This document shows positions 47,954 through 63,730 of a stretch of DNA of 64,000 nucleotides, in pieces. How positions within the stretch are numbered: position 1 is the stretch's first letter; each line of letters starts with the position of its first letter. The DNA is taken from contig OZ025672.1 in the NCBI GenBank assembly GCA_964019335.1, forward strand, positions 248,001 to 312,000, written 5' to 3'. The notes beneath the pieces are model-generated. The model made no database searches. It was not told where the DNA came from and saw only the letters and a list, made by a program, of their open reading frames with translations. The translations under genes and the position numbers were made by a program. Origin of the DNA: Diplonema japonicum. Taxonomy: Eukaryota > Protista > Euglenozoa: Diplonemea.

Positions 47954-49156
47954 AAAGAGAGAAAAATTCTCAGGGGCTCATTACTTCACGCTTGGCATGA
48001 ACATGCCCGCCCTCTCGGTTTCCGCAAGTAGTAACCATTCGATGGCCCTGCGGGCCCTGAAACGCTAACTGCGAAAGCCTTAAGGCAGCGGGAAAGTCAT
48101 TACTTTAATAAGCTCTAAGTTCTCCCCCATAAGGTACCGAAGGGTGAGAGAGGAGGTAATCACAAAGGAGCAGGTACAATACAATTCACATTTCAGTTTG
48201 CACAAACTATTTGTTTCAGTAAATCAACCATGCACGAAATAGAGAGAGAGATGGCAATGGCGGGCGCCGAACATTTAAAAAAAAAGGGGGGTAGGGGTGC
48301 GGTGTGTTTCTTTTTTTTTTTTCCACTCCTCCTTTTCTTTTCTTTGGACATCTTCTCAATCACAATATCAAACTTGACCAGGTAAACCGCTTTCCTTCTG
48401 CGCCATCTGAGTTGGTGTTTTTTTTTTTTTTTTTTTTTTTTTTGAAAAAAAAAAAGAAGAGGAAAAAAAAAAAAAAAAAAAAAGCAACCTCAGAACAGGA
48501 AACTTTAAGTTTGCTTTGTCGCATCAGAGGTACAGGACAGTTTACCGTTAAAGTCCACATTTAACCCCTTTTTCTTTTTATTCTCTCTTTCCCCCCCCCC
48601 CCCCACCTTTGAAAAAAAGGGGGAGAGAGAAAAGGGGGGGGAAAAAAAGAAGAAGGCAAAAGCAAACCTGAAGTTTCCCTGTTCTGAGGTTTTCTTTTCA
48701 AAAAATAAAAGAACATTCTTTATCATTTGATGCCCCCCCCCATTTTTTCTTTTTCGTTCTTTATTTTTTCTTTTCCAGTAGTGGCTAAAAGCCTCCCCAG
48801 GAGAAAAGAAACACGGTTCTTGTTTGCACCTGCAAGAAGATCGGTGCAAAAAAAAAAAAAAAAAATTCTAATTATAGTACAATTGGTCGTTGTCTCCCGT
48901 AAGAGAGCAAAGGAGAAAGCATGGGCTCGCAATCCACCCCCCACATCAGTGGGCAGGTGGCACCGGGAGCCGTTTCGAAAAAACTGATCTCTTTTTTTGC
49001 CACAGTACACACCTCTGTATCAACTGGCGCAAATGTTGCCAGGGCAGGGGCCCCCCTTTGACCAGCACCTTCGTGGAAAGGGATCACGGGACAACTCGGC
49101 CGCTCCTGCACGATTTAAGTTTGAAGAGAAATTAAAAAAAATAAAATAAAAAAAAA

Positions 49157-52100
49157 TCATACCCCTCCGTTCTTAATAAGCCTGTCAGGGCTGCGCGGCT
49201 CATCCGAATCGCTCTCCGCCTCCCTTCCATTCGAGTACTTGCACTCACTAGACTCCATCTTCTTGTGTTTGTAGAAGAAGAATATTGTCACAGCCAACGC
49301 AGCAGGGCCGAGCAACCAAAACACAATGCACAACCCAAGCCTCATTTTAACAAGCGCGTAAAGCTTGTTCTTAACATCATCTGCATCACTGTCAGTGAGC
49401 TCAATATATTGGTCCGCCCACAGTATAGGCATCATGGTACCAACAGGCGAGTTTCCGATATTCGGGAATGAGACAGGGAAGTGCACGCCACCCTTGTTGT
49501 TGATGTGGAAGTTAGCCTGAAGACGCCTCTCAGCCTTCATGACGATACCCGTGATGGGTTCGAAATAGACAATGGAGGTGTGGTTGGAATCGCCTACAGG
49601 GTCAGGGTTCTCATCCCTCACAAGGCCCTCCACACGTGAGGTGAGCTCTTCGGAATTGTTGAACGCGTATGAAAAGTGCGGTGCGGAGTAGAACGTCGGA
49701 ACACCAAAGTGCGGTGCCATGTTGATGAAACCGTAGAGCTCGTTGTTGAAACCACTGTCGACCCCGATCAGGTTCTGGTTCAAGTAATATTTCCTCAATT
49801 CGACACCTTTCACGGACACTGTCCCACCCCTCAGGAAGCTCACGTCCCTGTGGATCAGCTGCACCCACAGTGACACAGAGTCCGGTTCTCCAGGTACAAT
49901 ATTGTGGCTGTACGATATTTCCGGTGTGTACCTTGTGCCTGCCTTCGTCAGGTTGAACTTGTAGTCCCAGATTGTCTCTGCCGCGCGGCCGTAGTCCTTC
50001 TCGAAGAAGCCACGCTTCCTCCAGTCGTCCTTTCCTGTGTGCATAATGGACTCTCTGTCTTCACCTGATGCTTCGAAGAATGCCAGTGCCTCCTGCACTG
50101 AATACCAGTTGTAAAACGCTCCAGGGTAGTAGCTTCCTCGGAGAACTGTATACAAAGGGTCGTTGTTCCTGAACCACACTTCCTTTGCGGGCACCTTCGT
50201 GATGGACCTGTGAAACCAGCCGTCATTGTGGGTCAGCGCTGTGAGCGCGCCCACGCGGGTGGGGAAGTTTGTGTCGTATGTGATCTGGTGGAAGTACCCG
50301 ACAAGGTCGGCGGTGAGCGTTTCATTGTTGAGGAACGGGATTCCGAATGCTCCCAGGACGCCGTGCAGGGCCACCCTGGCCTCACATGTGGTCTTAATAC
50401 ACTCGTCCAGCGCATTGAGCGCACCCACTATGGCAATGAGGTTCGGCGCATTAGCTCCCGTGGTCCCGAAACGGACCTTCTGAAAGAAAAGCTCCGCTTC
50501 AGCGGCGTCAAGTCGGTAGTTCGTTCCGGTGCTTGCTGTGTAAGCCGCGAAAGACATAAAGAAAGGCAGCGCTGGTAGTTTAAGATATTGCGCAAAACCA
50601 GCATCCAGGTTAACAGGATCCGTGGCCCACAGAGTGGATGTGGCTGGACCCGCTACCTTTATCGCTGCCTCATAGACGAAGGAAGGCATGGCCATCTGGA
50701 TCTCGCCTTCACCTGCCACATTCAGCAGTTGCGCGAACCCCGCGATCAGCCCCGCGTAGGGCCCGTTGAACACGTAGAGGTTCTTCTCCGACTCGTCCTG
50801 CACACTCCTTTCGGGGATGAACTTGTAGCTCGTGACATCCACGTACGACACCTTCGTCCCGTTGTTCAGCACGGTGATGTTCACCGACTCAGTGTGGTAC
50901 TCATACACAAACGGGCCCACCTCCTCTAGCTTCGGATGCTCCGTCCCCGCCATCACCTCGAACACGTTGGTGATGTTGAAGGCATAGTAGTCCCTGTACA
51001 TGATGGCTGTGTCGTTCCTCTTCGTTGTCCCGAACTTGAACATTTGCTCAGCGTCATTGGTGTCGAGCGTCAGGCCATCGTGGAGGACGTTCCCCAAGAT
51101 CAGAGGAACAAGTCCCCACATGAGCAGACTGAGCGAGATCATCATGATGCCGCAGCAGTACCCGCACGAGAGGGACAGTTTCTTGCTCGACCCAAACACA
51201 ACAAGCGGTGTCAGAAGGGCTGTGAACCCAATGATGCTTCCCGCGATAACAACACCCATCCACTCATCGCTGTCCTTGGGGCCTTGTGTGTATAGGCCTA
51301 CATTTTCATTTGCCAGGACCTGCGGACTCGGTTCGGGTGTGGGCGGCACAGTGCCAGTAGGGATGGGGATGACACAAGTGCTGTCACAGCTCACCGTAGT
51401 ACAGGAGTGGATGTGGCGGTGGCTCACAGAGGAGGCGACGTTGAAGTACCAGTCGGCGACAGCCTTCGCAGCATTCACCCCGTCCACAGTGAAGAGGGGC
51501 ATCGCAGCGGGGACACCAGCACCAGCAGCTGCACTCACTCCTGCGATGTGGCTGTAGCAGGAGGTCAGGAAGAGACCGTGCGAAGAGACATTGGGGGACT
51601 GAAGAGTGGCTGCCATCCTCTCCCCGTAGTAGTTGATGTAATTGGTCCCCGCACTCACGTTCCCTGTCAGCCCGTTCAGGGTGAGCTGCAGGCCGTCGTA
51701 GCGGTTCTGAACAATGAACAGGCGAACGCGAGCGTCAGCGAAGGCATTCGAATTGGAGACCATCACTGCCGCCATGCTGAGGCACGCCCCTCCGAGGGGA
51801 CCCATAGCCCCAGCGCACCCAGCATGAACCTTAGCCTGCCACAGAACGAGGAGGGAGAAGAAACGCGAGGAGTCGGGGTCCTTCCCCGCCGTCACGAAGC
51901 TTGCGTAGTCGCTGGGGGGCGCCCAGGCAAACGCGCTTGTCAAGTCCAGCGAGGGGAAGATGAAGCCGTCGACAGGGACGCACGCCACACTCGACCCCGA
52001 GAACACCCCCGCTGCATAGTCGCAGTGCTGCAACACGGCGTATCCCCCAACACCCGAACCTGTGAACAAGAGGTCATCGTTCCCAAGCTCCGCCTTCAGC

Positions 52101-52585
52101 GCCTGCAGAATGAGCTCCATGTTCGTGGCCCCGGAGAACTTCATCCCGTGTGACATTGGTGTCGGCTTCGTGAGGCGGCCAATGTGCATGTCCCCGCTGC
52201 AGTGCGGGATCCAAACCTTGTTCGCTTGGTGGAAGCGCTCGTTCAGAGCTTCCACATTGCTCATCACCAGCACCTCGTACGGGTTGTAGTTTGGAAGCTG
52301 CTGCTCGCTTGCCACGGTCGCAGGGAACGACTTGCTGCTCCCTGCTATCCCTCGTGTCTGGGCTCTGCAGTCCTCACCCTTCGCTGCAGGGAACCCGCAC
52401 GGCTCCCCACCGCCTGCTCCCACCACCCACATCGAGGACGCAGCAGATCCAGCTGACTTGTAGTACCCTGCGGTGCTGCCGTCCAGGCAGCTTGTCCCGG
52501 CAACAGGCACCCATGTGAACTGAGCAGTGGACACGGTAAACAGTGCACTCAATAAAAATGCTATGTTCGTCATTTTTCTTTTCAT
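49157..52585 (-). CDS. Notum/pectin-acetylesterase-like domain + CD36/SR-B domain receptor, paralog A
   Basis: Signal peptide; CLDGSTAGYY, HCSGDMHIG, NRYD..Q, SCYSH; two TMs; CD36 motifs FNITN..EV...P.LEEVGPFVY, F.PERS, SAPHF, EPITG...A.RRLQ.N, PILW; C-terminal TM. Confidence 0.92.
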   Translation of the reverse strand: MKRKMTNIAFLLSALFTVSTAQFTWVPVAGTSCLDGSTAGYYKSAGSAASSMWVVGAGGGEPCGFPAAKGEDCRAQTRGIAGSSKSFPATVASEQQLPNYNPYEVLVMSNVEALNERFHQANKVWIPHCSGDMHIGRLTKPTPMSHGMKFSGATNMELILQALKAELGNDDLLFTGSGVGGYAVLQHCDYAAGVFSGSSVACVPVDGFIFPSLDLTSAFAWAPPSDYASFVTAGKDPDSSRFFSLLVLWQAKVHAGCAGAMGPLGGACLSMAAVMVSNSNAFADARVRLFIVQNRYDGLQLTLNGLTGNVSAGTNYINYYGERMAATLQSPNVSSHGLFLTSCYSHIAGVSAAAGAGVPAAMPLFTVDGVNAAKAVADWYFNVASSVSHRHIHSCTTVSCDSTCVIPIPTGTVPPTPEPSPQVLANENVGLYTQGPKDSDEWMGVVIAGSIIGFTALLTPLVVFGSSKKLSLSCGYCCGIMMISLSLLMWGLVPLILGNVLHDGLTLDTNDAEQMFKFGTTKRNDTAIMYRDYYAFNITNVFEVMAGTEHPKLEEVGPFVYEYHTESVNITVLNNGTKVSYVDVTSYKFIPERSVQDESEKNLYVFNGPYAGLIAGFAQLLNVAGEGEIQMAMPSFVYEAAIKVAGPATSTLWATDPVNLDAGFAQYLKLPALPFFMSFAAYTASTGTNYRLDAAEAELFFQKVRFGTTGANAPNLIAIVGALNALDECIKTTCEARVALHGVLGAFGIPFLNNETLTADLVGYFHQITYDTNFPTRVGALTALTHNDGWFHRSITKVPAKEVWFRNNDPLYTVLRGSYYPGAFYNWYSVQEALAFFEASGEDRESIMHTGKDDWRKRGFFEKDYGRAAETIWDYKFNLTKAGTRYTPEISYSHNIVPGEPDSVSLWVQLIHRDVSFLRGGTVSVKGVELRKYYLNQNLIGVDSGFNNELYGFINMAPHFGVPTFYSAPHFSYAFNNSEELTSRVEGLVRDENPDPVGDSNHTSIVYFEPITGIVMKAERRLQANFHINNKGGVHFPVSFPNIGNSPVGTMMPILWADQYIELTDSDADDVKNKLYALVKMRLGLCIVFWLLGPAALAVTIFFFYKHKKMESSECKYSNGREAESDSDEPRSPDRLIKNGGV

Positions 52586-52718
52586 GTTTTCTATTTTCTT
52601 TTTTATATTCCTTCGTCGAAGTGGGACTACATAACAGGGTTGAAAAAAAGAATAGTAAACATGACGTTAAAAAAAAAAAAAGAAGGAAGGGGGGAGGGAT
52701 CAAAGAAAAAAAATATAT

Positions 52719-53115
52719 ATGAGTTAAAGGAAGTCTTTGTGAGACGCCCCCTTGTTCTCATCTTCTACCTGCACCTATCCCCTTTCAGCAGCGGTTTCTC
52801 CTCCTTTGGTGGTCTTGCCGGCCTTCTCCCCAGCCTGGCCGCTCTTTCTCTTCGTTCCCTCGCCCATTGTCCTTTCAACGCCTCTAGGTCATGCTTGGTC
52901 TTCGGTGATGCAAATATCGCCCTCCTGTTCCATCCGACCGCCTTTGTCCTCCCGATGGATCGTAGTGTGTGCACCCTTGTGCTCGGCTCAGCTGGGAAGG
53001 CCCTCCTTCCTTTCACCTTCTTCAGTACCCTCCCTAGCTCCCATGTGTGCCAGATCTTCTTCATCAGTCCATGCAATCTCCTCGCTTTCTGCTGTACTTC
53101 TGCGAGATCCCCCAG
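52719..53115 (-). mobile_element. 5'-truncated non-LTR retrotransposon 3' fragment
   Basis: GDL..VQQKARRLHGL..KKVKGRRAFPAE...HTLRSIG..K.VGWNRR.IFAS is homologous to the C-terminus of ORF 56001-56822. Confidence 0.8.
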
Positions 53116-54202
53116 CTTCCCCCCAAAAAAAGGAAAAAGAAAAAAGAAAAAAAAGCGAGCGGGAAAAAAAGAGAACGGAAGGAAAAGAAAAAGGGAAAAA
53201 AAAAAAGAAAAGAGTAATAAGAATGAAAGGAAACAAACGGATCCAGGGCGAGAGGAAGAAGCTATCAATGGTCCCGGTTGGGAGTCGCCAGTGAGGTAAA
53301 AAGGAGAATTACCTCCCTTTTTTATTTTTTTTCTCTTTTTTTTTTCTCGGCTTCTGTTGACAGTGGTGTGAGACGCTATCATAGTGAAAGGATGGCCAGA
53401 AGCTGAAGAGAACCGGTTTTTTCTTTCTTCTTCTCTTTTTTTTCTTTTTTTTTCCAATTGTGGAAAAGATTCTTCACCATCTATGGCTTTTCACACGACC
53501 TACCGAGTTTGAAAGACGATTGCTTTTTTTTTTTTTTTTTTGAACAACATTTGCATTAAAATGTCAGGGGGGGGGGGGGGGGGGGGAGAAGGGGCAAATA
53601 TTCAAAGAGAGAGAGGAAAAAAAAAAAGAAGAACCCGTGTGAACATGTCGGTTAAAACTCTGTAAATTTTAACCCTAAAACACGTAACGAAGGTACAAAA
53701 AAAAAAGAAGAAGGCACGAGACTTCCGATGGAGGAGGGATTCACATGGGAGACAACGTACCACGGCATACAAAGAGGAAAAAAAAAATAAAATATAAAAA
53801 AGAAACAACAAGGGGGGGGGAGGACTATGAAGGAGCAATTGGGTGGGAAATATAGATTAGTAGTGGGGGAAGAAAGAAAAAAAAAAAGAGGTTTTATTTT
53901 TTTAAATCTGAAAAAATAATAATTTTTTTTTTTTTGAAAAACTCGATGTGGGCTATGGAGAACAACAACAAAACAAAAAAAAAAAAATATATTCGGCATA
54001 ACATACTCACGGACGCCGAAGATGTGTTATAAAAGCATTACAACGGCTTCAAAACCACGTTCATCGAGGAAGAAAAAGGGTGGGGGTAGGGGTGGGCACC
54101 TTGAACTTTTTTTATTCAATTTCTGCTAGTGATCCTGCGCCACACTAGAACTGGTAGGGCTGAGCGAACCAGCATACATACGGGTGTAAGTAAAATCGGC
54201 GG

Positions 54203-54246
<44 letters not shown>

Positions 54247-54922
54247 AGAAGGATAGGCGCCGAGGGGAAACGAGGGAAGCCCGCAACACAATTTAAAAAT
54301 ATAGTGACAAGGGGGGTGGTGAGACAGTGTTGCAAAGTAGAAAGAAAAATATTATTATAGATAACAGCCAAAAAAAAAAGGGGGGGTAGAGGTGTCCCTT
54401 TAGACTAATCTGCTCTTTTTTTTTTCCTTTTTTTTTTCCCCCTTCCCCGTGCAACTGCGGGGTATGAAGCATCATTTCTTGGCTCCGCGTGTTGCACGGA
54501 GAAGCTCCACAATAAAAAAAAAATAAAATAAAAAAAAAGAGCAGAAAGTGAGTTGGGCTGGGAATGCAAATCGGAAGTGTGGCACTTCCGAAGGTAAGGA
54601 ATAAGAAGAAATCGACCACTTTCAGTTTTTTTTTTTCCCATTTTCATAGGTCTCTTCTTATTTGTTCCGATAGATCGAAAGGGTTCAATTTACTGCTTGC
54701 TATTCTTCTCCTTTTTCTTTTTCGTTTTTTTTTTTTTTTTTTTTTTTTTTTCTTTTTCACTTGTGGCAGTTGTACAGGTGTAAGATTGACACCAGTGATT
54801 TCTTTTTCTTTTAAAAAAAAAAAAAAAAAGGAGAACGCAATAAAATAAAACATGCTCTCAGTTACATTCTTTTTTTTTTTTTTTGGTTGGAGGCATGAAA
54901 AAAAACTACAACAACTGGTTGC

Positions 54923-54953
<31 letters not shown>

Positions 54954-55951
54954 TCAGGCTTCCCTCAGCTGGGTTTCTTCACACTTGTTCCCTGTTTTTT
55001 TTTTTTTTTTTTTTCCCATTCCCCTCTCCATTCAGAGAGGAAAACAAACAAACAAACAAAAACAAACAAAAAAAAAAGAACTCAACAACCGGAACGTATA
55101 TGTCGAAACCACCCAACTGGGAGAAGATGAAAACAATATTGAAGGTATAGCACATGACAGTGGTGCTTTCCCCTCTTCTTTTTTTTTCTTCTTTCTTTTT
55201 CTTTTTGCAGAGCATACTTTTATAGACAAAAAAAAACAATGAGAATAGAAAGGCGCGAGGAGGGCGGGGGGGGGGGGGGGGGGGGCAATGAAGGAAGAAA
55301 AAGAAAGAGAATTAAAAAAAAGGGGGGGGAGAGGATGCTGTGCAAACGTCGACGAGATAACACAAAAGAACTTCTTGTCACAACAATCACCAACAACAAC
55401 CTACCCCTTTATTTTTTTCCCAATATACACTCTATAATGCTGCGAGAAAGATCAGTATGCGATTCGGCGCTCTCCTCGGTTCGTGTACTTGCAAGAAAAA
55501 TATTTTTCTCCGTGGGGGGGGGGGGGGGGGAGAGAGACTTAAAACAGTTTTATTTGAAAGAGAGGGTTCTTTGTGCCGAAGCGAAGAAGAAAAAAAAAAA
55601 AAAAAACACGGGGGAGTAAAAAAGGAAAGAAAAAAGAGGGAAAAAAAAAAACATGTTTTTTTTTTTTCCTCTTTTTTCTTGTTCATCACTCTTCTTGTTT
55701 TTTTTTTTTTTTTTTTTTCTTCCTTTGCCTCGCTTCGTGCACCCCACCTCCCCTACAAACAATGAAACAGAGAGGTAACAATAATTTTCTATGAAGCAAA
55801 CAAAAAAGCTACCAAAAACTCGAGACAAGTTTAGGCAAAACAGAATGAAGCTGGAGAAGAAAGGAAAAAAGAAGGAGGAGGGGGGGATTATTGCAGGCAC
55901 TCAAAAGGAGGCGCTACCGGGGGGAGGGGAATTATAGACCAAATTAAAGAG

Positions 55952-57170
55952 ATGAGATAAAGGAGGTTCCTGTCTTGGAACGTCCCCCTTGTCTACTTAT
56001 CTACCCCTTTCTCCCTTCTGGGGCCTCGGCCTTTCTTTCTTTTTTGGCTGTGTTGCCTTTCTCAAAGTATCCTTTCTCTGATGCAAAAACTGGCCTTCTG
56101 TTCCATCCCAGACTCTTCTTCGCACCTATGGTTCTGAGCGCGTGGTTCTTCTGGCTCTCCGCTGGGAAGATCCGCTTGCCTCTGACCTTCTTCTGTATGC
56201 GTGCTGTGTCCCACCCTTCTTGGATTCTTTCCAGGAGGCCGTGGAAACTCCGCGCCTTCTTCTGTATCATGTCCAGATCACCCTTCTTCCCCGTGATCGG
56301 CTCGACGCCCAGCGTGTTCTCGAAGTCTAGTACGAGTTCCATTGTGGTGACTGTCGTCTTCCTCGGTCCATCGTACCACTTCAGCTTTCTGAGCCACTTG
56401 ACGATGTCTTCACCGTGCTTCATCATCAGGCTCCCGCTCACATGCTTCCTCAGCTCCTTCCATTCAGGTGGCGCATGAGCGTTTCCTTCCGTTATCTGTT
56501 CCCAGGGGTGCGTCGTGTACGTTTCTAGCATTCTCTTGTCCTGGAGAAGCTGGTCTCGTTTTGCCACCACTTCCAGCAGGTAGTCCTGCGTCTTCCTCAG
56601 CCGGTGTTGGTGTGATCGGTGACCACGCGGGAGCGTTCCATGTAGCTGCATGCAGATTGGCATTTCCGTCTTGTTGGCCACTACTTCTGCATGTACTTCC
56701 TTCTGTTGCACCTCCTTCGCCACACTGCATTCCCATAGTGCGTGTCGTAGCATGTTGCTCTCGTCCTCCTCCGCACCGCACGCGTCGCATGTGACCTCGT
56801 CTGTTGTTGGTCTCTTGTTCACACGCTCGTGTGTCTCGTCTCATCCTTCCGACGGCGGCGCGAATGCAACATCATACAGATAGCTGGGTAGCACCGTCGT
56901 TCTCAGGACTTCCGCTTTCTGCCAGAAAGAGAGCTGAGTGGTCGCGAGCCTCCGCAGCGTGTCGCCCGCCGCCCTGGCCCTGATGTTGTCCGTCTGCGTC
57001 TGACCATCCGTGCGTATCCTCGCCCCCAGGATCTTGATCTTGTTCGTAGACCGAGCTGCCTTCCTGCCAACTATGTCGCAGAATGCGGATGCACTGTCCG
57101 TGGCTTTTTGTAGTACTTCTGCTAGTTTCGCCAACAGGTATGCGTCGTCAGCATACGACAGAGTCTCTGC
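55952..57170 (-). mobile_element. Decayed non-LTR (LINE) retrotransposon: RT C-terminal part and CCHC finger
   Basis: LSYADD, IKILG, LS..QK..VLRTTVLP..LY, then CDACG....HALWEC; frameshifted and internally deleted. Confidence 0.85.
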
Positions 57171-57266
57171 TGTAATTAAAAAAAAACAAAAAATCTTCTC
57201 ATCTTTCTTTTTTTTTTTGCGGGACAAGTTGACCAAAATTTTTTTGAAAAAAGAATTGTTTTTCTT

Positions 57267-57304
<38 letters not shown>

Positions 57305-57813
57305 TGCTGTGCCAGAATTTTCTCCTGAGAGAGAAGAAAAACAAAAAAAATTCGTTTTCCTCCCTAAATCAAAAGGGGGTGTTTTTTTTGTTTTTTTTTT
57401 TTAATGTCAACTTCTTCTCGCTTTTGTTTTTCTTTTCTTTTCTCACAGGCAGCCATGGATAAAAAAAAAGGGGGGAAAACTAACCGTGGTTTGTACGTGC
57501 CGGGGGGCAGAAAGCTGGAAGAGCTAATACCCCGTGGTACACGTTGTCAGTCCCCCTTTGTTTAGACAGAAAAAAAAAGGGGGGGGGGGGGAAACGAAGG
57601 GGAAGAAAGAAAGTTGCTTTTTTTTCTTTCTTTTTTTTTTTAAAAGTTCCGTTCGCTCATGAACGACAAAGAGCGGCCAACAGAGAATTCACTGTGAGGG
57701 AGCAGAAAAAGTGTTTTTTGCTTTTTTTTTTTTTGGAGGGGAGGGTGGGATTTTGCTTGACCGTTCATTCTTTTTCTTTTTTTTTTTCTCTTTTTTCTTT
57801 TCTTCCAAAATTC

Positions 57814-60800
57814 CTAGTATGGCTGAGTTTCAGGCTCTGCCTTGGCCTCTTCTGCCTCGATTTCAGGATGGTTCTTACTCTCCACATCTTCTTCGGGCAC
57901 CGGACGGGTGACTGCTCTGTAGAAAAGGAAGAACGAAAGCCCAATCATAAGAGCCCCAACGACCCACAATATCACACAGAGGATAGACCTGGCCTTCAAG
58001 GGGCCATGAACCCACATTTTGATAGTGTCAGCCTGATCGTCAGAGAGCTGTCCGTGCTCGTCGACGTAGAAAACAGGGAAAATGATGCCCTTGGGGTCTG
58101 TCTTGAGGGTGTCAAGAGTGGGGTACGACATTGGGAAGTAAACACCGTTCTTCGCACCGATTTCGACGTTGAGTTGGAGCCTCCTTGCGAGCCTGGTGAT
58201 CCATCCTGTCACAGGCTCCACCCACACTGCCGTCGCGTGATCGGTGTTCTCGGTGAAGGTCGGCTCCCCTAGCGGCTTCAGCCCGTCCACTTTCTGCGAG
58301 AATTCCGAGTCAAACGCGTACGAAAAATGCGGCCCCGAGTACACCACAGGGAACCCCCCGTTGACGCTCGTCATGTTGATGAACCCCTTGTTCCCGTTGA
58401 AGAAGTTCCCGTCGACGTCAAGCAGCGACTTATCCAAGTTGTACCTCACCATGTCCACTCCTTTCGTCGTTTCTGTTGCGATCCTCCTGAACCCTACAGG
58501 ACGCCACAACAAGTCCACCCAGATGGCCGCCTTCTCCGGTGTGCTCGGGATCCCTGAGTACGAGTAGTCCGGCTGCGGCACAATCCTCGCGTAGGACCTG
58601 TCGCACTTCAAAGGTTCCCTCCAGTACGGGACGTCCTTGAGGCCGTCCTCCTCGTACACGAAGTACGAGTCCCTCCAGTCTCCCTTCCCGTTGCTCTGTG
58701 TGGTCCACTCGCCCATGACATGCGGTGCCGCTTCTTCCTGTGAGTTGTAGTTGCTGAACACTCCGGGGAAGGGCTTGCCCTGCAGCAGGTTGTGCAGCGG
58801 GTCGTCGTTGCTGAACCAAATCCCCTTTGCCTCACGCTTTGTGAAGGTCCTGTGTACCCATCCGTCTTTGCCCATCGTCAGAGCAGACAGCACACCGAGA
58901 GACTGCGGACCAAGACGCCCATCGTAAATCAGTTGATGGAAGTAGCCGGTGAAATCCGGCACAAGGGCGGGGTTGGCGAAGACTGATGGGTTACGGTCAG
59001 TGCCGCCAATGCGGGCGAGGATACCAAGCAGGGCGTTAAGGTGCGCACAGGGGGAAGGCTGCGCGGCCAGGCACTCACTGGTTGCCTCGAGGGCACCCAC
59101 CAGAGTGATCAGATTTTTGGCACCTGCACCGGTTGTGCCGAATGACAGAATTGAGAAAATCTTTGCACCTTCAGCTTGCGTGATTGTGTTGTTCGACTTC
59201 GACACTGTGCTCGTGTACGCAGCGAACCCGAACACGAACGGCAGGCGCGGGACACCGAGCGCTCCGGCAACCTGTGCCTCGACATTCATGGTAGCCCAAG
59301 CAGCGCCTGCCGCGTTAAGACCGCCGAAACCAGCTGCGACTTTATCGAACAATAGCGAAGGTGCCCCCATCTGGATCTCACCCTCTCCGCTGCCTTTCAG
59401 CGAGATGGCCAGACGGCTCACTAGCAGAGTGTAAGGCATGTTCAGCACATAAAGGATCGTGTCCTCGGGGTGGGGGGAGGACTCAGGGATGAAGTCGTAG
59501 TCCCCGTAGTCGATGTAGCGGATCATCGTATCATTGACCTCTGTCACGTTCATGGCCTGCGAGTAGTACCTGTACACAAATGGACCGACAGCGTTGACAT
59601 GCGGCTTCTCGGTCCCTGCCAACACTGCATTGATGTTCGTGATGTTGAAGGCGTAGAATTCTCTGTACCGCACGCTCGCATCGTCCCTCTTCGTGTTCTC
59701 GAACTTCCTCACCTGTTCCTCATCCTTGGCGTCGAAGACGGAGCCTTTTCTGACATTTTCCTGGATGATCGCAGGAATAGCACCCCATGCCACAAGACCC
59801 AGCACAATGAACAATAGCCCAATGAAGAACAACGCGGCAGACGGCTTTGATCCTCTGATGCACATGTACACAGTGATCCCAATGCAAACCACCGCAAGAA
59901 TACTCGCTCCGACAATGCTGGGAACCCAGGCTTCGCTGTTCCTTGGGCCTTCATCAGGGTACCCCACACCGCTCAAGTACTCTAACTGAGGGCTGGGCAC
60001 TGGCGGTATCGTCTCACCCTCAGGGATGGGGATGACACAAGTGCTGTCACAGCTCACCGTAGTACAGGAGTGGATGTGGCGGTGGCTCACAGAGGAAGCG
60101 ACGTTGAAGTACCAGTCGGCGACAGCCTTCGCAGCATTCACCCCGTCCACAGTGAAGAGGGGCATCGCAGCGGGGACACCAGCACCAGCAGCTGCACTCA
60201 CTCCTGCGATGTGGCTGTAGCAGGAGGTCAGGAAGAGACCGTGCGAGGAGACACTGGGGAACTGAAGAGTGGCTGCCATCCTCTCCCCGTAGTAGTTGAT
60301 GTAATCAGTCCCCGCACTCACGTTCCCTGTCAGCCCGTTCAGGGTGAGCTGCAGGCCGTCGTAGCGGTTCTGAACAATGAACAGGCGAACGCGAGCGTCA
60401 GCGAAGGCATTCGGATCGGTGGCCATCACCGTTGCCATGCTGAGGCACGCCCCTCCGAGGGGGCCCTGAGCCGCTAACGCCCCAGCGCACCCAGCATGAA
60501 CCTTAGCCTGCCACAGAACGAGGAGGGAGAAGAAACGCGAGGGGTCGGGGTCCTGCCCTGCCGTCACGAAGCTTGCGTAGTCGCTGGGGGGCGCCCAGAA
60601 AACACTCATGTTTGTCAAGTCCAGCGAGGGGAAGATGAAGCCGTCGACAGGAACGCACGCCACACTCGACCCCGAGAACACCCCCGCTGCATAGTCGCAG
60701 TGCTGCAACACGGCGTATCCCCCAACACCCGAACCTGTGAACAAGAGGTCGTCGCCGGTCCCAAGCTCCGTCGTCGCGTTCAGCGCCTGCAGAATGAGCT

Positions 60801-61269
60801 CCATGTTCGTGGCCCCGGAGAACTTCATCCCGTGTGACACTGGTGTCGGCTTCGTGAGGCGGCCAATGTGCATGTCCCCGCTGCAGTGCGGGATCCAAAC
60901 CTTGTTCGCTTGGTGGAAGCGCTCGTTCAGAGCTTCCACATTGCTCATCACCAGCACCTCGTACGGGTTGTAGTTTGGAAGCTGCTGCTCGCTTGCCACG
61001 GTCGCAGGGAACGACTTGCTGCTCCCTGCTATCCCTCGTGTCTGGTCTCTGCAGTCCTCACCCTTCGCTGCAGGGAACCCGCACGGCTCCCCACCGCCTG
61101 CTCCCACCACCCACATCGAGGACGCAGCAGATCCAGCTGACTTGTAGTACCCTGCGGTGCTGCCGTCCAGGCAGCTTGTCCCGGCAACAGGCACCCATGT
61201 GAACTGAGCAGTGGACACGGTACATAATGAACTCATCAACAGCAACCAGCTCATATCAGAGGACCTCAT
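57814..61269 (-). CDS. Notum/PAE-like + CD36 receptor, paralog B
   Basis: Same architecture as paralog A; ATG at 61269 (MRSSDMSWLLL). Confidence 0.92.
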   Translation of the reverse strand: MRSSDMSWLLLMSSLCTVSTAQFTWVPVAGTSCLDGSTAGYYKSAGSAASSMWVVGAGGGEPCGFPAAKGEDCRDQTRGIAGSSKSFPATVASEQQLPNYNPYEVLVMSNVEALNERFHQANKVWIPHCSGDMHIGRLTKPTPVSHGMKFSGATNMELILQALNATTELGTGDDLLFTGSGVGGYAVLQHCDYAAGVFSGSSVACVPVDGFIFPSLDLTNMSVFWAPPSDYASFVTAGQDPDPSRFFSLLVLWQAKVHAGCAGALAAQGPLGGACLSMATVMATDPNAFADARVRLFIVQNRYDGLQLTLNGLTGNVSAGTDYINYYGERMAATLQFPSVSSHGLFLTSCYSHIAGVSAAAGAGVPAAMPLFTVDGVNAAKAVADWYFNVASSVSHRHIHSCTTVSCDSTCVIPIPEGETIPPVPSPQLEYLSGVGYPDEGPRNSEAWVPSIVGASILAVVCIGITVYMCIRGSKPSAALFFIGLLFIVLGLVAWGAIPAIIQENVRKGSVFDAKDEEQVRKFENTKRDDASVRYREFYAFNITNINAVLAGTEKPHVNAVGPFVYRYYSQAMNVTEVNDTMIRYIDYGDYDFIPESSPHPEDTILYVLNMPYTLLVSRLAISLKGSGEGEIQMGAPSLLFDKVAAGFGGLNAAGAAWATMNVEAQVAGALGVPRLPFVFGFAAYTSTVSKSNNTITQAEGAKIFSILSFGTTGAGAKNLITLVGALEATSECLAAQPSPCAHLNALLGILARIGGTDRNPSVFANPALVPDFTGYFHQLIYDGRLGPQSLGVLSALTMGKDGWVHRTFTKREAKGIWFSNDDPLHNLLQGKPFPGVFSNYNSQEEAAPHVMGEWTTQSNGKGDWRDSYFVYEEDGLKDVPYWREPLKCDRSYARIVPQPDYSYSGIPSTPEKAAIWVDLLWRPVGFRRIATETTKGVDMVRYNLDKSLLDVDGNFFNGNKGFINMTSVNGGFPVVYSGPHFSYAFDSEFSQKVDGLKPLGEPTFTENTDHATAVWVEPVTGWITRLARRLQLNVEIGAKNGVYFPMSYPTLDTLKTDPKGIIFPVFYVDEHGQLSDDQADTIKMWVHGPLKARSILCVILWVVGALMIGLSFFLFYRAVTRPVPEEDVESKNHPEIEAEEAKAEPETQPY

Positions 61270-61408
61270 TAGTTTTTGTTTTGTTTTGTTGGAACTGCGG
61301 AAATCTGATTGTCGTTTGTAAACCACAAAAAAGAAAGAAAGAAAAACGTAAGAGTAAACCAGCAGCCGGATCAACATCTGGCCTCACACCCACAGGGCTG
61401 ATACGAAG

Positions 61409-62998
61409 TCACGAGTTCAAGAAAGACGGAACGGGACACTCCGGCTGTTTGAGGAGGATCCCAGAGACAGTATCATCGTCCCATTCGCGTGTCGCAGGGA
61501 TATGAGTACGGGGCCACTGCCTGCGGGAGAGAGAATTGCCATCGAGGGTGAGGTCTGTGGGAGGGAGGATGAGAGTGCAGGTGGAGGTTGCATAAGAGTA
61601 GGTGAAGGCGGCACAGTTGAAATGGGAAAAGCAACTCCTCGCACAGCTTTCAGGGGAGTCCCTCCCGGCTGGTTCCTTTAGAGAAGAAGAACCAAGACTT
61701 GCCGAAGCCGTGTACTTGAAGTTGCTTTCCATATAAGCAACACCACTACGGCCGTCAGCTTCAAAGTCATAAAAGGCAATGTTTGTAGAGACGGCAAGGC
61801 CGAGGGACATATAGCGCTCACGCAAGGCGCGGACGAAGCGAAGGACCGAGTAAGAGACGATCCCAGACATGTCGATGATATCGATGTCAGTTCTGAACCC
61901 CCTTGCGTCTTGCATCTGCCGCCTAGCTTTTCTGTTATAGTACTGAAGACTCTTCGTGCCGTAGTGGTTGTAGCCGATCCCGGCTGAGCAACAGTTGGAA
62001 GAGTATTTCACAGGGTCGCGTGCTCCGCCACCTCGTCGCAGCCACCAGTCGCACTGCTCAGCATCGGTGTCCCACCGTGTCTCCACACAGCGTTCCGACT
62101 TCCAGTTCGACGTCACTCCTTCCGACTGCGGCCACAGATCGTTCGTCTCCTTCCACTCTGTGGTGTTCACAGGCCAGTGAACCCACCCGATGTGCTCCTC
62201 CTTCGCGCAGTGCTTTGTGTTGTACATGATTTTCATATGACGGCATTCAAGGCAATAATTGAAGGTGGAACGTTTGCAAAGAGAGTTTATACGGTGGTTG
62301 GAGTACTTTCCTGCGGTGAGATGCGCGCAGGCCCCGCCGGAGGACAAGAAGTTCTCGGTCATCAAGCCTGCTGGGTGGTAGTTGAAGTCGTTGGTGCCGA
62401 ACCGCTCCCAGCGCATGGTGACGTGGGATTGAAAAGGGTTGCAAGTTGTGCGGACGTACTCGGAGAGGCTACATCCGTTATGTGGGAAGATGAACTCATC
62501 TGTGTCGGCAAAAATGAGCCAATCGACTTTGTTCGCGACGTGCCTTGCGCAGAACTTCGGTGCTATGCAGTTGTGCTTCCAATTCTTAACAGACCTGTCC
62601 ATTGCACAGCCCGCATCGTGATCGGGGACCTTTTCTTCGATTATCGTTAAAAAACCCATCTCGCTGTAATACCGTAGAATAGCACCGGTACCGTCCCTTG
62701 TCTCGTCGGTGTTGTCATTTACAAGCCATAGGTGGTCGATTCCTGCTATGATCTGAAGTTCGATCCACTCGCGGAGCCAAGCACCGCTGCCTCTTGTCTG
62801 ACCGCAAACACCAACGTGCCATTCCCCTTCTTGTTTAAACCCTGTTTTTTTGCTTTTCGTTGCTGCTGGTGGTATATTGCTTGGTAGTGAACTAAGCTCT
62901 TCTTGTTCCACCGTTTTATTCTCCGCGAAGCTCATCATCAAGCAGATGCCCATTACACTGCACACCACCACTATAAGTCCGAACTTATTTTGACGCAT
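61409..62998 (-). CDS. Type II membrane GT92/DUF23-like glycosyltransferase with a C-terminal PAN/Apple domain
   Basis: N-terminal TM; WLREWI...GIDH..L.ND, DWLIFADTDEF (DxD), W..FG, NHY.TKS; PAN-like SPESCARSC....CAAFTY....TCTL. Confidence 0.85.
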   Translation of the reverse strand: MRQNKFGLIVVVCSVMGICLMMSFAENKTVEQEELSSLPSNIPPAATKSKKTGFKQEGEWHVGVCGQTRGSGAWLREWIELQIIAGIDHLWLVNDNTDETRDGTGAILRYYSEMGFLTIIEEKVPDHDAGCAMDRSVKNWKHNCIAPKFCARHVANKVDWLIFADTDEFIFPHNGCSLSEYVRTTCNPFQSHVTMRWERFGTNDFNYHPAGLMTENFLSSGGACAHLTAGKYSNHRINSLCKRSTFNYCLECRHMKIMYNTKHCAKEEHIGWVHWPVNTTEWKETNDLWPQSEGVTSNWKSERCVETRWDTDAEQCDWWLRRGGGARDPVKYSSNCCSAGIGYNHYGTKSLQYYNRKARRQMQDARGFRTDIDIIDMSGIVSYSVLRFVRALRERYMSLGLAVSTNIAFYDFEADGRSGVAYMESNFKYTASASLGSSSLKEPAGRDSPESCARSCFSHFNCAAFTYSYATSTCTLILPPTDLTLDGNSLSRRQWPRTHIPATREWDDDTVSGILLKQPECPVPSFLNS

Positions 62999-63730
62999 TT
63001 TGTTGTACAAATAAGGGGGAAAGAAGCCAAACGTTGGTGGAATCCCACTTAGGCCTCTGAAAAAAAATAGAAAAGAAAAAAAAGGAAGTAAAAAAAAAAA
63101 AAACCCCACCGAGTTGTTGTTTTTGACGCTCCCCTCCCCTTCCTGCTTTGGTTTTAAAAAAAAAAGGGAAAATTTGAGAGGGGGGGAAAAAGGAGGAGTG
63201 AATAAAAGACGTGAGAACTGAAACTTCTTCCCGATCCCCCCCTAAAAGGGGGGAATATAAAAAAAGAAAAGAAAGGTTTCGGTAAAATACTGGAGGATTA
63301 AAAAAAAAAAATAAGATTATCGATTGTTATACCTGTTCTTTCGGCCATCTACAAGAAAAATACAACAGGCTGCGGCCAACAGCATGGCACCATCCACGCT
63401 CTAATAATACAACCGCCTTTTCTTGTTTTTTTTTTTTTACAAGCACGAGATGTAGAGGACGTGAAAGGTAATACAGATTAATACACATCAGTCACACGAT
63501 AGACAGCTCAGGTCAGATATGAACAATCAGAGAGAAAAGAAAAGCCTTTTGATTGAGGAGAAAGAAAAAGGGGGTGAGGGGAGACGGAAAATTCGTTCGA
63601 TATTCTTTTTTTTCCTTTTTTTTTTTTCATTTTAATACGTTGGACGCCCTTCCTGCCATGCGGTGCTGCTCACCTAGGTAGGGTGAAACGGCAATCACGA
63701 GACAGGCGGGGGCGTAGAATGACAACATGC

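Follow-up and report, generated by a model that had tools for sequence, protein, structure and literature searches.

A predicted pseudo-esterase fused to a CD36-type scavenger receptor in diplonemids

Can a polysaccharide-esterase fold and a scavenger receptor be parts of one membrane protein, and what would such a protein do? The question is raised by a window of 64,000 nucleotides of Diplonema japonicum DNA (assembly GCA_964019335.1, contig OZ025672.1, positions 248,001 to 312,000; coordinates are given below in window numbering), in which two long open reading frames (ORFs) are listed on the minus strand, 49157-52585 (1142 codons) and 57814-61377. Both genes, referred to here as paralog 1 and paralog 2, encode in succession a signal peptide, a pectin acetylesterase (PAE)/Notum fold (PF03283), a proline-rich linker, a transmembrane (TM) hairpin, a CD36 ectodomain (PF01130), a third TM segment and a tail. 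The fusion is a real, lineage-restricted variant of the class B scavenger receptor (SR-B). A first-pass annotation, made from the sequence alone, had described the two ORFs as novel, intronless paralogs joining a Notum-like pseudo-esterase to a CD36 domain. The two paralogs and the domain order hold in Pfam, hydropathy and AlphaFold2 (AF2) analyses, while the words "novel" and "intronless" have to be restricted.

Architecture and topology

The coding segments that carry the domains are the following.

49163..52585, minus strand: paralog 1 exon 1, codons 1-1141, from the signal peptide to the start of the tail (ORF, translation, Pfam)
57814..61269, minus strand: paralog 2 complete coding sequence (CDS), 1151 codons plus stop, same architecture as paralog 1 (translation, Pfam, hydropathy, transcript ORF P0002)
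51254..51373, minus strand: paralog 1 flexible proline-rich linker, residues 405-444 (sequence; predicted local distance difference test (pLDDT) below 50 for 409-442)
51095..51253, minus strand: paralog 1 helical hairpin formed by TM1 (445-463), a short lysine-rich loop and TM2 (~474-497) (hydropathy; AF2 helices H440-463 and H467-502)
49277..49333, minus strand: paralog 1 TM3 (1085-1103), followed by KHKK and a cytoplasmic tail with an acidic cluster and SPDRLI

In both paralogs, the PAE match lies within the N-terminal 400 residues and the CD36 match within the C-terminal 650. Paralog 1 scores 102 bits for PAE and 167.4 bits for CD36, paralog 2 105 and 164.8 bits, against Pfam gathering cut-offs of 26.6 (PF03283) and 26.5 bits (PF01130); the N-terminal domain is thus a PAE/Notum domain, as had been claimed. 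Hydropathy analysis gives each protein a signal-like N-terminal segment and three TMs, located at residues 445-463, ~474-497 and 1085-1103 of paralog 1 and at residues 452-470, 480-498 and 1096-1114 of paralog 2 (59860-59916, 59776-59832 and 57928-57984). TM1 and TM2 are separated by a loop of ~10 residues containing Lys-Lys, and the cytoplasmic turn of the paralog 1 hairpin harbors a cysteine cluster, CGYCC. TM2 and TM3 flank the CD36 domain with KK and KHKK on their cytoplasmic sides, the extra TM and the luminal head being placed upstream.

A CD36 ectodomain must be exoplasmic, and the layout then places the PAE domain on that side (exoplasmic or lumenal) too, regardless of signal cleavage. 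Paralog 1 has 10 N-x-S/T sequons, and each of them falls in one of these two predicted exoplasmic domains. The product is therefore a three-pass membrane glycoprotein with both domains facing the same side, which agrees with the topology initially proposed, and the three-TM layout is identical in all the fusion relatives listed below. The linker between head and hairpin is predicted by AF2 to be disordered over residues 409-442.

Gene models and transcripts

The 3' end of paralog 1 comprises four further segments.

49106..49162, minus strand: paralog 1 intron 1, 57 nucleotides, GT..AG; absent from X8 contig record 25 and from transcript ORF P0001
49013..49105, minus strand: paralog 1 exon 2, 31 codons, tail ...ERPSCPVIPF... 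(P0001 and X8 contig)
48407..49012, minus strand: paralog 1 intron 2, 606 nucleotides, GT..AG; skipped in P0001 and the X8 contig
48368..48406, minus strand: paralog 1 exon 3, 12 codons (MAQKESGLPGQV) and a TGA stop; exact match to the P0001 C-terminus

P0001 and P0002 are complete Trinity ORFs from the EukProt transcriptome of D. japonicum (EP01064), and each contains both the PAE and the CD36 domains. P0002 is collinear with paralog 2 at 99.7% identity and backs a start at 61269. The description as intronless fails for paralog 1, in which the naive ORF stop (49157-49159) sits within the 57-nucleotide GT-AG intron 1; two introns add 43 tail codons, and the spliced product is 1184 residues long instead of 1142, with the CDS ending at 48368. 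The ERPSCPVIPF motif of exon 2 is also found in D. ambulator P0003. Searches and models were run on exon 1 (1141 of 1184 codons), and the joined three-exon CDS was translated for comparison of the tail with P0001.

P0001 itself joins the CD36 half of paralog 1 to the head sequence of paralog 2, with the changeover inside the near-identical head. Trans-splicing or alternative splicing between the paralogs was considered as its origin and rejected, as a switch within a 96%-identical tract, as here, is what an assembler chimera typically shows.

Four public runs were compared with window positions 48000-53500: three are unspliced DNA and the fourth, X8, is RNA. An X8 contig of 2789 nucleotides omits exactly both paralog 1 introns. 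It covers the 3' untranslated region, CD36, both TMs and the linker as far as residue 399, the point from which the two paralogs share their sequence, and is unbroken over 49165-51388 of exon 1. Beyond residue 399, contigs overlapping by 30 nucleotides carry on through the head. Since these contigs, like P0001 and P0002, run across both domains, the transcripts join the domains and do not split them. Both paralogs are expressed, each encoding one membrane protein with both domains.

Distribution and origin

When 1.84 billion representatives were searched exhaustively with phmmer, only six proteins, all of them from diplonemids, fell below 1e-30, followed by single-domain matches at ~125 bits; one plain PAE is also listed among the top proteins (the six from phmmer and one from a second search). 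In this whole set, the fusion occurs in diplonemids only. Its members besides paralog 1 are:

D. japonicum paralog 2
D. ambulator P0003, a 5'-truncated transcript
D. papillatum KAJ9447140.1, named 'Pectin acetylesterase 3' in NCBI nr
D. papillatum 'Pectin acetylesterase 7', on the same 108-kb contig as KAJ9447140.1
Sulcionema specki P0005
Flectonema neradi P0006 and P0152 (EP01060), with the head eroded to 25.5 bits

The two D. papillatum proteins are true family members: domain order and the three TMs are the same, the nucleophile is likewise lost, and both copies sit on a single contig. They differ from the D. japonicum proteins in being only 37-39% identical to them and in having no homogenised head, and their database names cover the inactive head only. 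In Flectonema, a 1050-residue isoform retains only the first ~60 PAE profile positions and an 807-residue isoform begins in the linker, reflecting either head decay in this lineage or an assembly effect.

One might suspect that adjacent genes for an anchored PAE and a CD36 protein are being read as one, through polycistronic transcription or mis-assembly. Diplonemid genes are tightly packed on one strand, some stand-alone PAEs end in a C-terminal hydrophobic anchor, and a pan-eukaryote survey of SR-Bs published in 2023 found gene-model fusions in other taxa (PMC10715195). Against this, the frame is open throughout in seven genes or transcripts of five species, with only ~10 residues between TM1 and TM2; DNA contigs from two studies (three runs) agree with the assembly; and the same ORF recurs in the independent Sulcionema and Flectonema transcriptomes and in the D. 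papillatum genome. Such an artefact is extremely improbable.

All members share the three-TM layout, and in the tree their CD36 halves group together with 100/100 support, separate from the two ordinary D. japonicum CD36 genes; the fusion thus arose once and was retained in several diplonemid genera. The anchored stand-alone PAEs hint at the route: a PAE with a C-terminal anchor could plausibly have been read through into a CD36 gene lying downstream.

The literature search found no publication describing a PAE-CD36 fusion, and the fusion is not widely catalogued. The claim of novelty is thus upheld for the literature but not for the databases, as the D. papillatum proteins are already in NCBI nr, with both Pfam domains precomputed, under PAE names. 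In the 2023 survey an SR-B was by definition TM-CD36-TM, and additional domains were regarded as gene-model fusions; its diplonemean sampling comprised Hemistasia (four TM-CD36-TM proteins) and Rhynchopus (none) and no Diplonema, so the fusion was missed (PMC10715195). A word-indexed homologue search with the family alignment returned only D. japonicum transcripts; it missed D. papillatum as well and is hence uninformative on range. JGI metagenome contigs scanned with the same alignment gave 167 pattern matches, none of which was confirmed.

The esterase-fold head

51440..52504, minus strand: paralog 1 PAE/Notum-fold domain, residues 28-382 (PF03283, 4e-29; Notum by sequence, 7e-8; Foldseek)
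52043..52060, minus strand: nucleophile elbow GSGVGG, residues 176-181 (GxSAGG in the family; the serine position is Gly178; alignment to Notum GSSAGG)

The AF2 model of the head has a pLDDT of ~90, and Foldseek superposes it on Notum structures with template modelling scores of 0.80-0.84 (E 1e-18) at ~20% sequence identity. Notum is the sole PAE-family member surfacing among solved structures, so this match demonstrates the family fold and not a kinship with Notum. In the tree, which contains no bona fide Notum, the fused heads form one clade (support 99) among environmental PAEs with GxSAGG, apart from the D. japonicum PAE clade and from sponge Notum-like sequences. The Notum analogy put forward at the outset therefore holds for family and fold, and no specific kinship to Notum was found in this tree. 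To note, three Sycon ciliatum proteins annotated as 'Notum homolog' (P0058, P0059 and P0065, 950-978 residues) each match the PAE/Notum profile in two separate stretches.

The catalytic elbow sets these heads apart. The nucleophile column of a 142-sequence family alignment is a serine in 86 sequences, and GxSAGG is intact in all the nearest PAE-only relatives and in nearly all scanned stand-alone PAE ORFs of the same genome. The five full-length fusion members have instead G, G, G, G and N at this position, the alanine at +1 being replaced too, in elbows reading GSGVGG, GIGTGG, GVGTGG or GVNSGG. The residue preceding the nucleophile position is S, S, I, V and V across these members, and none of them offers a conserved Ser, Cys or Thr at or beside the elbow. 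The surroundings of the site persist: QNRYD and SCxxH are retained in all five, and the paralog 1 head keeps Asp297 (QNRYD), His346 (SCYSH), the GGG oxyanion loop and the cysteines. The head is thus predicted to be a pseudo-esterase, as first proposed: a structural member of the PF03283 family, but not an enzyme.

Notum and the pectin acetylesterases (PF03283, CAZy CE13) share with it the alpha/beta-hydrolase fold, the Asp, the His and the oxyanion loop, and are likewise secreted or exoplasmic and disulfide-rich; the fusion head differs by lacking the nucleophile serine, by its membrane tether and by its position outside the Notum-like clade. Conservation of Asp297, His346 and the GGG loop could be taken to mean a membrane-tethered active esterase that employs a non-canonical nucleophile beside a scavenger receptor. 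The lack of any conserved Ser, Cys or Thr at or next to the elbow, together with the changed +1 alanine, makes this most unlikely.

Descent of the head from the expanded PAE array of the same genome was also considered and rejected, given separate clades and an identity of 22-28% to the 13 intact PAEs of D. japonicum. The array in question consists of eight same-strand PAE genes in tandem (G000:C77:227615-244172; L007-L010, L012-L014, L016). Every ORF scanned in it has an intact GxSAGG, and from these motifs it is probably a working pectin acetylesterase set of D. japonicum.

The CD36 half

49334..51094, minus strand: paralog 1 CD36 ectodomain, residues 498-1084 (PF01130, 5e-49; AF2; structure match)
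50216..50764, minus strand: multi-helix apex expansion, residues ~608-790 (gap in the Pfam match; about ten high-confidence AF2 helices, with an all-helical insert predicted at ~608-785; at the position of the three-helix bundle)

The model of the CD36 half, from TM2 to the end of exon 1 and built with 60 homologs, has a pLDDT of 89.8 and a predicted template modelling score of 0.85. It superposes on LIMP-2 with a Z score of 35.3 and a root-mean-square deviation of 2.7 Å over 370 of 389 residues and on CD36 with a Z score of 34.8, ~95% of the solved chains being covered. The CD36 domain is accordingly complete in the model, an asymmetric beta-barrel ectodomain with a helical apex. LIMP-2/SCARB2, CD36 and SR-BI share with the fusion the full ectodomain fold, two flanking TMs with cytoplasmic ends, many sequons and membrane-adjacent cytoplasmic cysteines. 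The fusion, 20-23% identical to them, adds an N-terminal TM and a luminal esterase-fold domain of ~400 residues, and its apex has about ten helices instead of a three-helix bundle.

An insert of ~180 residues splits the CD36 Pfam match in two, at profile positions ~140-160, and the ~200 model residues without a LIMP-2 counterpart correspond to the ~608-790 stretch. Searched alone against ESM-Atlas, the insert gave only weak matches in a CD36 context (<=0.84) and no independent domain identity. Other protist CD36 matches from the searches show the same split Pfam pattern, and independent multi-helix expansions at alpha4/alpha5 have been described in non-metazoan SR-Bs, including Dictyostelium LmpA and oomycete and ciliate proteins (PMC10715195). 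The long helical insert of the first-pass annotation is therefore real, but of an already known, recurrent kind in protist SR-Bs. None of the surveyed proteins possesses a second folded ectodomain, unlike the diplonemid fusion. The apex has been assigned as the ligand-recognition site, and protist CD36 proteins act in phagocytosis, among them the apex-expanded SR-Bs of Dictyostelium (PMC10715195).

The best structural matches being LIMP-2 chains, including that of the LIMP-2/glucocerebrosidase complex 9fjf, a LIMP-2-like protein residing in lysosomes or food vacuoles comes into consideration. Its CD36 body would chiefly serve sorting and the export of lipid out of the digestive compartment, and the head would be a passenger or a protective luminal coat, maybe cleaved off in the linker, as if LIMP-2 were fused to the glucocerebrosidase that it carries. 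The long, disordered linker fits this proposal. So does the tail, where an acidic cluster and SPD(R/Q/H)L(I/L) are common to D. japonicum paralog 1, D. ambulator and D. papillatum and resemble the dileucine sorting signal, [DE]xxxL[LI]. The spacing of this SPDxL[LI] motif is non-canonical, though, and the paralog 2 tail is devoid of it; delivering an inactive hydrolase has no obvious value; and CD36 matches the model equally well (34.8 vs 35.3), so the fold is silent on the compartment. A residence of this type is possible, if rather doubtful.

The first-pass annotation had itself envisaged a lipid capture-and-import device, on the surface or in food vacuoles, in which a Notum-like hydrophobic pocket of the head would bind an acyl chain and hand it over to the CD36 tunnel, to be inserted from there in the membrane. 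Both domains are indeed on the same side and joined by a short tether, the head has the Notum fold and the CD36 core is complete, with lipid transfer through the tunnel established for SR-BI, LIMP-2 and CD36 (PMC10715195). The head, with ~20% identity to Notum, groups with ordinary PAEs in the tree, which gives it no specific kinship to Notum, and no long-acyl specificity is known outside the Notum clade. Direct lipid import of this kind is hence unlikely.

Two observations concern CD36 proteins other than the fusion. An ordinary D. japonicum CD36 gene (~731 residues; G000:C8:152726-154108, minus strand, in L002, G000:C8:151226-155608) has about five hydrophobic segments N-terminal to CD36 and is another non-standard SR-B architecture. 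Among metagenome-assembled genomes (MAGs), a Kariarchaeaceae protein (P0118/P0157, MHA2249150.1, 1648 residues) matches CD36 at its C-terminal end, with 280 bits on PF01130 for P0118, and a Lokiarchaeota protein (P0045, MBD3340896.1, 967 residues) has a C-terminal CD36 match by phmmer only (1.5e-19). These Asgard matches may be informative on how the family originated, or may be contamination; a search for 'Asgard' and 'CD36' found no relevant publication.

Divergence of the two paralogs

51359..52551, minus strand: homogenised tract of paralog 1, residues 12-409, the entire PAE head (95.6% nucleotide identity)
60022..61235, minus strand: homogenised tract of paralog 2 (alignment with paralog 1, synonymous divergence (dS))

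The two tracts are 95.6% identical over 1214 nucleotide columns, with a dS of 0.047. Outside them dS exceeds 2 and is saturated, and protein identity is ~40%. The two D. papillatum copies are evenly ~50% identical from end to end, with no homogenised head. This low dS in the head, next to saturation beyond it and even divergence in D. papillatum, points to gene conversion that took place recently in D. japonicum and was limited to the head. Such conversion keeps one near-identical head on two strongly diverged CD36 bodies.

Proposed function

We tentatively favor, with a probability of about 0.45, a capture receptor of the class B scavenger type that would act in a feeding, endocytic or phagolysosomal pathway with the dead esterase as its lectin-like head. 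The head keeps the pocket-forming motifs, has no nucleophile in any lineage and is held by a flexible tether beside a complete CD36 domain. Diplonemids digest pectin-type polysaccharides and prey walls (PMC10161547). The dead head on its tether, the enlarged apex, the shared tail motif and this diet together lead us to prefer the capture receptor over the readings discussed above. The head would bind ester-bearing ligands without hydrolysing them, the candidates being O-acetylated glycans of prey walls or exopolymers, which are the ancestral substrate class of PAEs, or alternatively O-acylated molecules. It would hold the ligand beside the CD36 domain, which would provide uptake or sorting and possibly passage of lipid through its barrel.

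Neuroligins, gliotactin and neurotactin provide a working analogy for such a head: their alpha/beta-hydrolase domains lack the catalytic serine and are membrane-anchored binding modules. These cholinesterase-like adhesion molecules are single-pass, restricted to metazoans, from another hydrolase family and without a CD36 partner.

Several observations weigh against the capture receptor. The retained Asp and His leave some room for residual chemistry. The erosion of the Flectonema head to 25.5 bits indicates that it may be dispensable there. The RNA support consists of assembled contigs and not of single full-length molecules, with the spliced-leader site not in view, and Rhynchopus and Hemistasia have no such fusion in the SR-B survey (PMC10715195).

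A more elaborate reading is a diplonemid-specific, covalently coupled uptake machine with two steps. Its dead pocket would trap an ester-linked acyl or acetyl ligand of the prey, dock on the enlarged apex and feed the hydrophobic part of the ligand to the CD36 tunnel. In D. japonicum, the two bodies would take one and the same head to different membranes. This scheme is improbable as it stands; if true, it would be the fused counterpart of the animal pairs of a binder and a CD36 protein, such as LIMP-2 with glucocerebrosidase or SNMP1 with odorant-binding proteins.

Neighbouring sequence

52730-53130: dispersed repeat of ~400 nucleotides directly upstream of paralog 1
61409-63109, minus strand: gene with GT92 glycosyltransferase and PAN domains, ending 140 nucleotides upstream of the paralog 2 start codon
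41723-42985, minus strand: ORF of 420 residues with a cysteine dioxygenase type I domain (PF05995, 79 bits)

The repeat has 414 candidate copies in the genome, of which the 40 scored are 98-100% identical, and its read depth is 1e4-1e5 against a flanking depth of ~200. It resembles a young element of the short interspersed (SINE) or miniature inverted-repeat transposable (MITE) type.

Significance

The fusion pairs the signature polysaccharide-esterase fold of the organism, in a non-catalytic form, with a scavenger-receptor body found across eukaryotes. It corrects the misleading database names 'Pectin acetylesterase 3' and '7', and indicates that CD36 proteins can accept a second ectodomain by way of an added TM, an architecture excluded by definition in the main SR-B survey. 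D. papillatum is genetically tractable, and its fusion proteins are a directly testable target. The protein is a candidate lineage-specific surface or endomembrane receptor of diplonemids, and would represent a clear-cut natural case in which a pseudo-enzyme has been recruited to serve as the head of a receptor.

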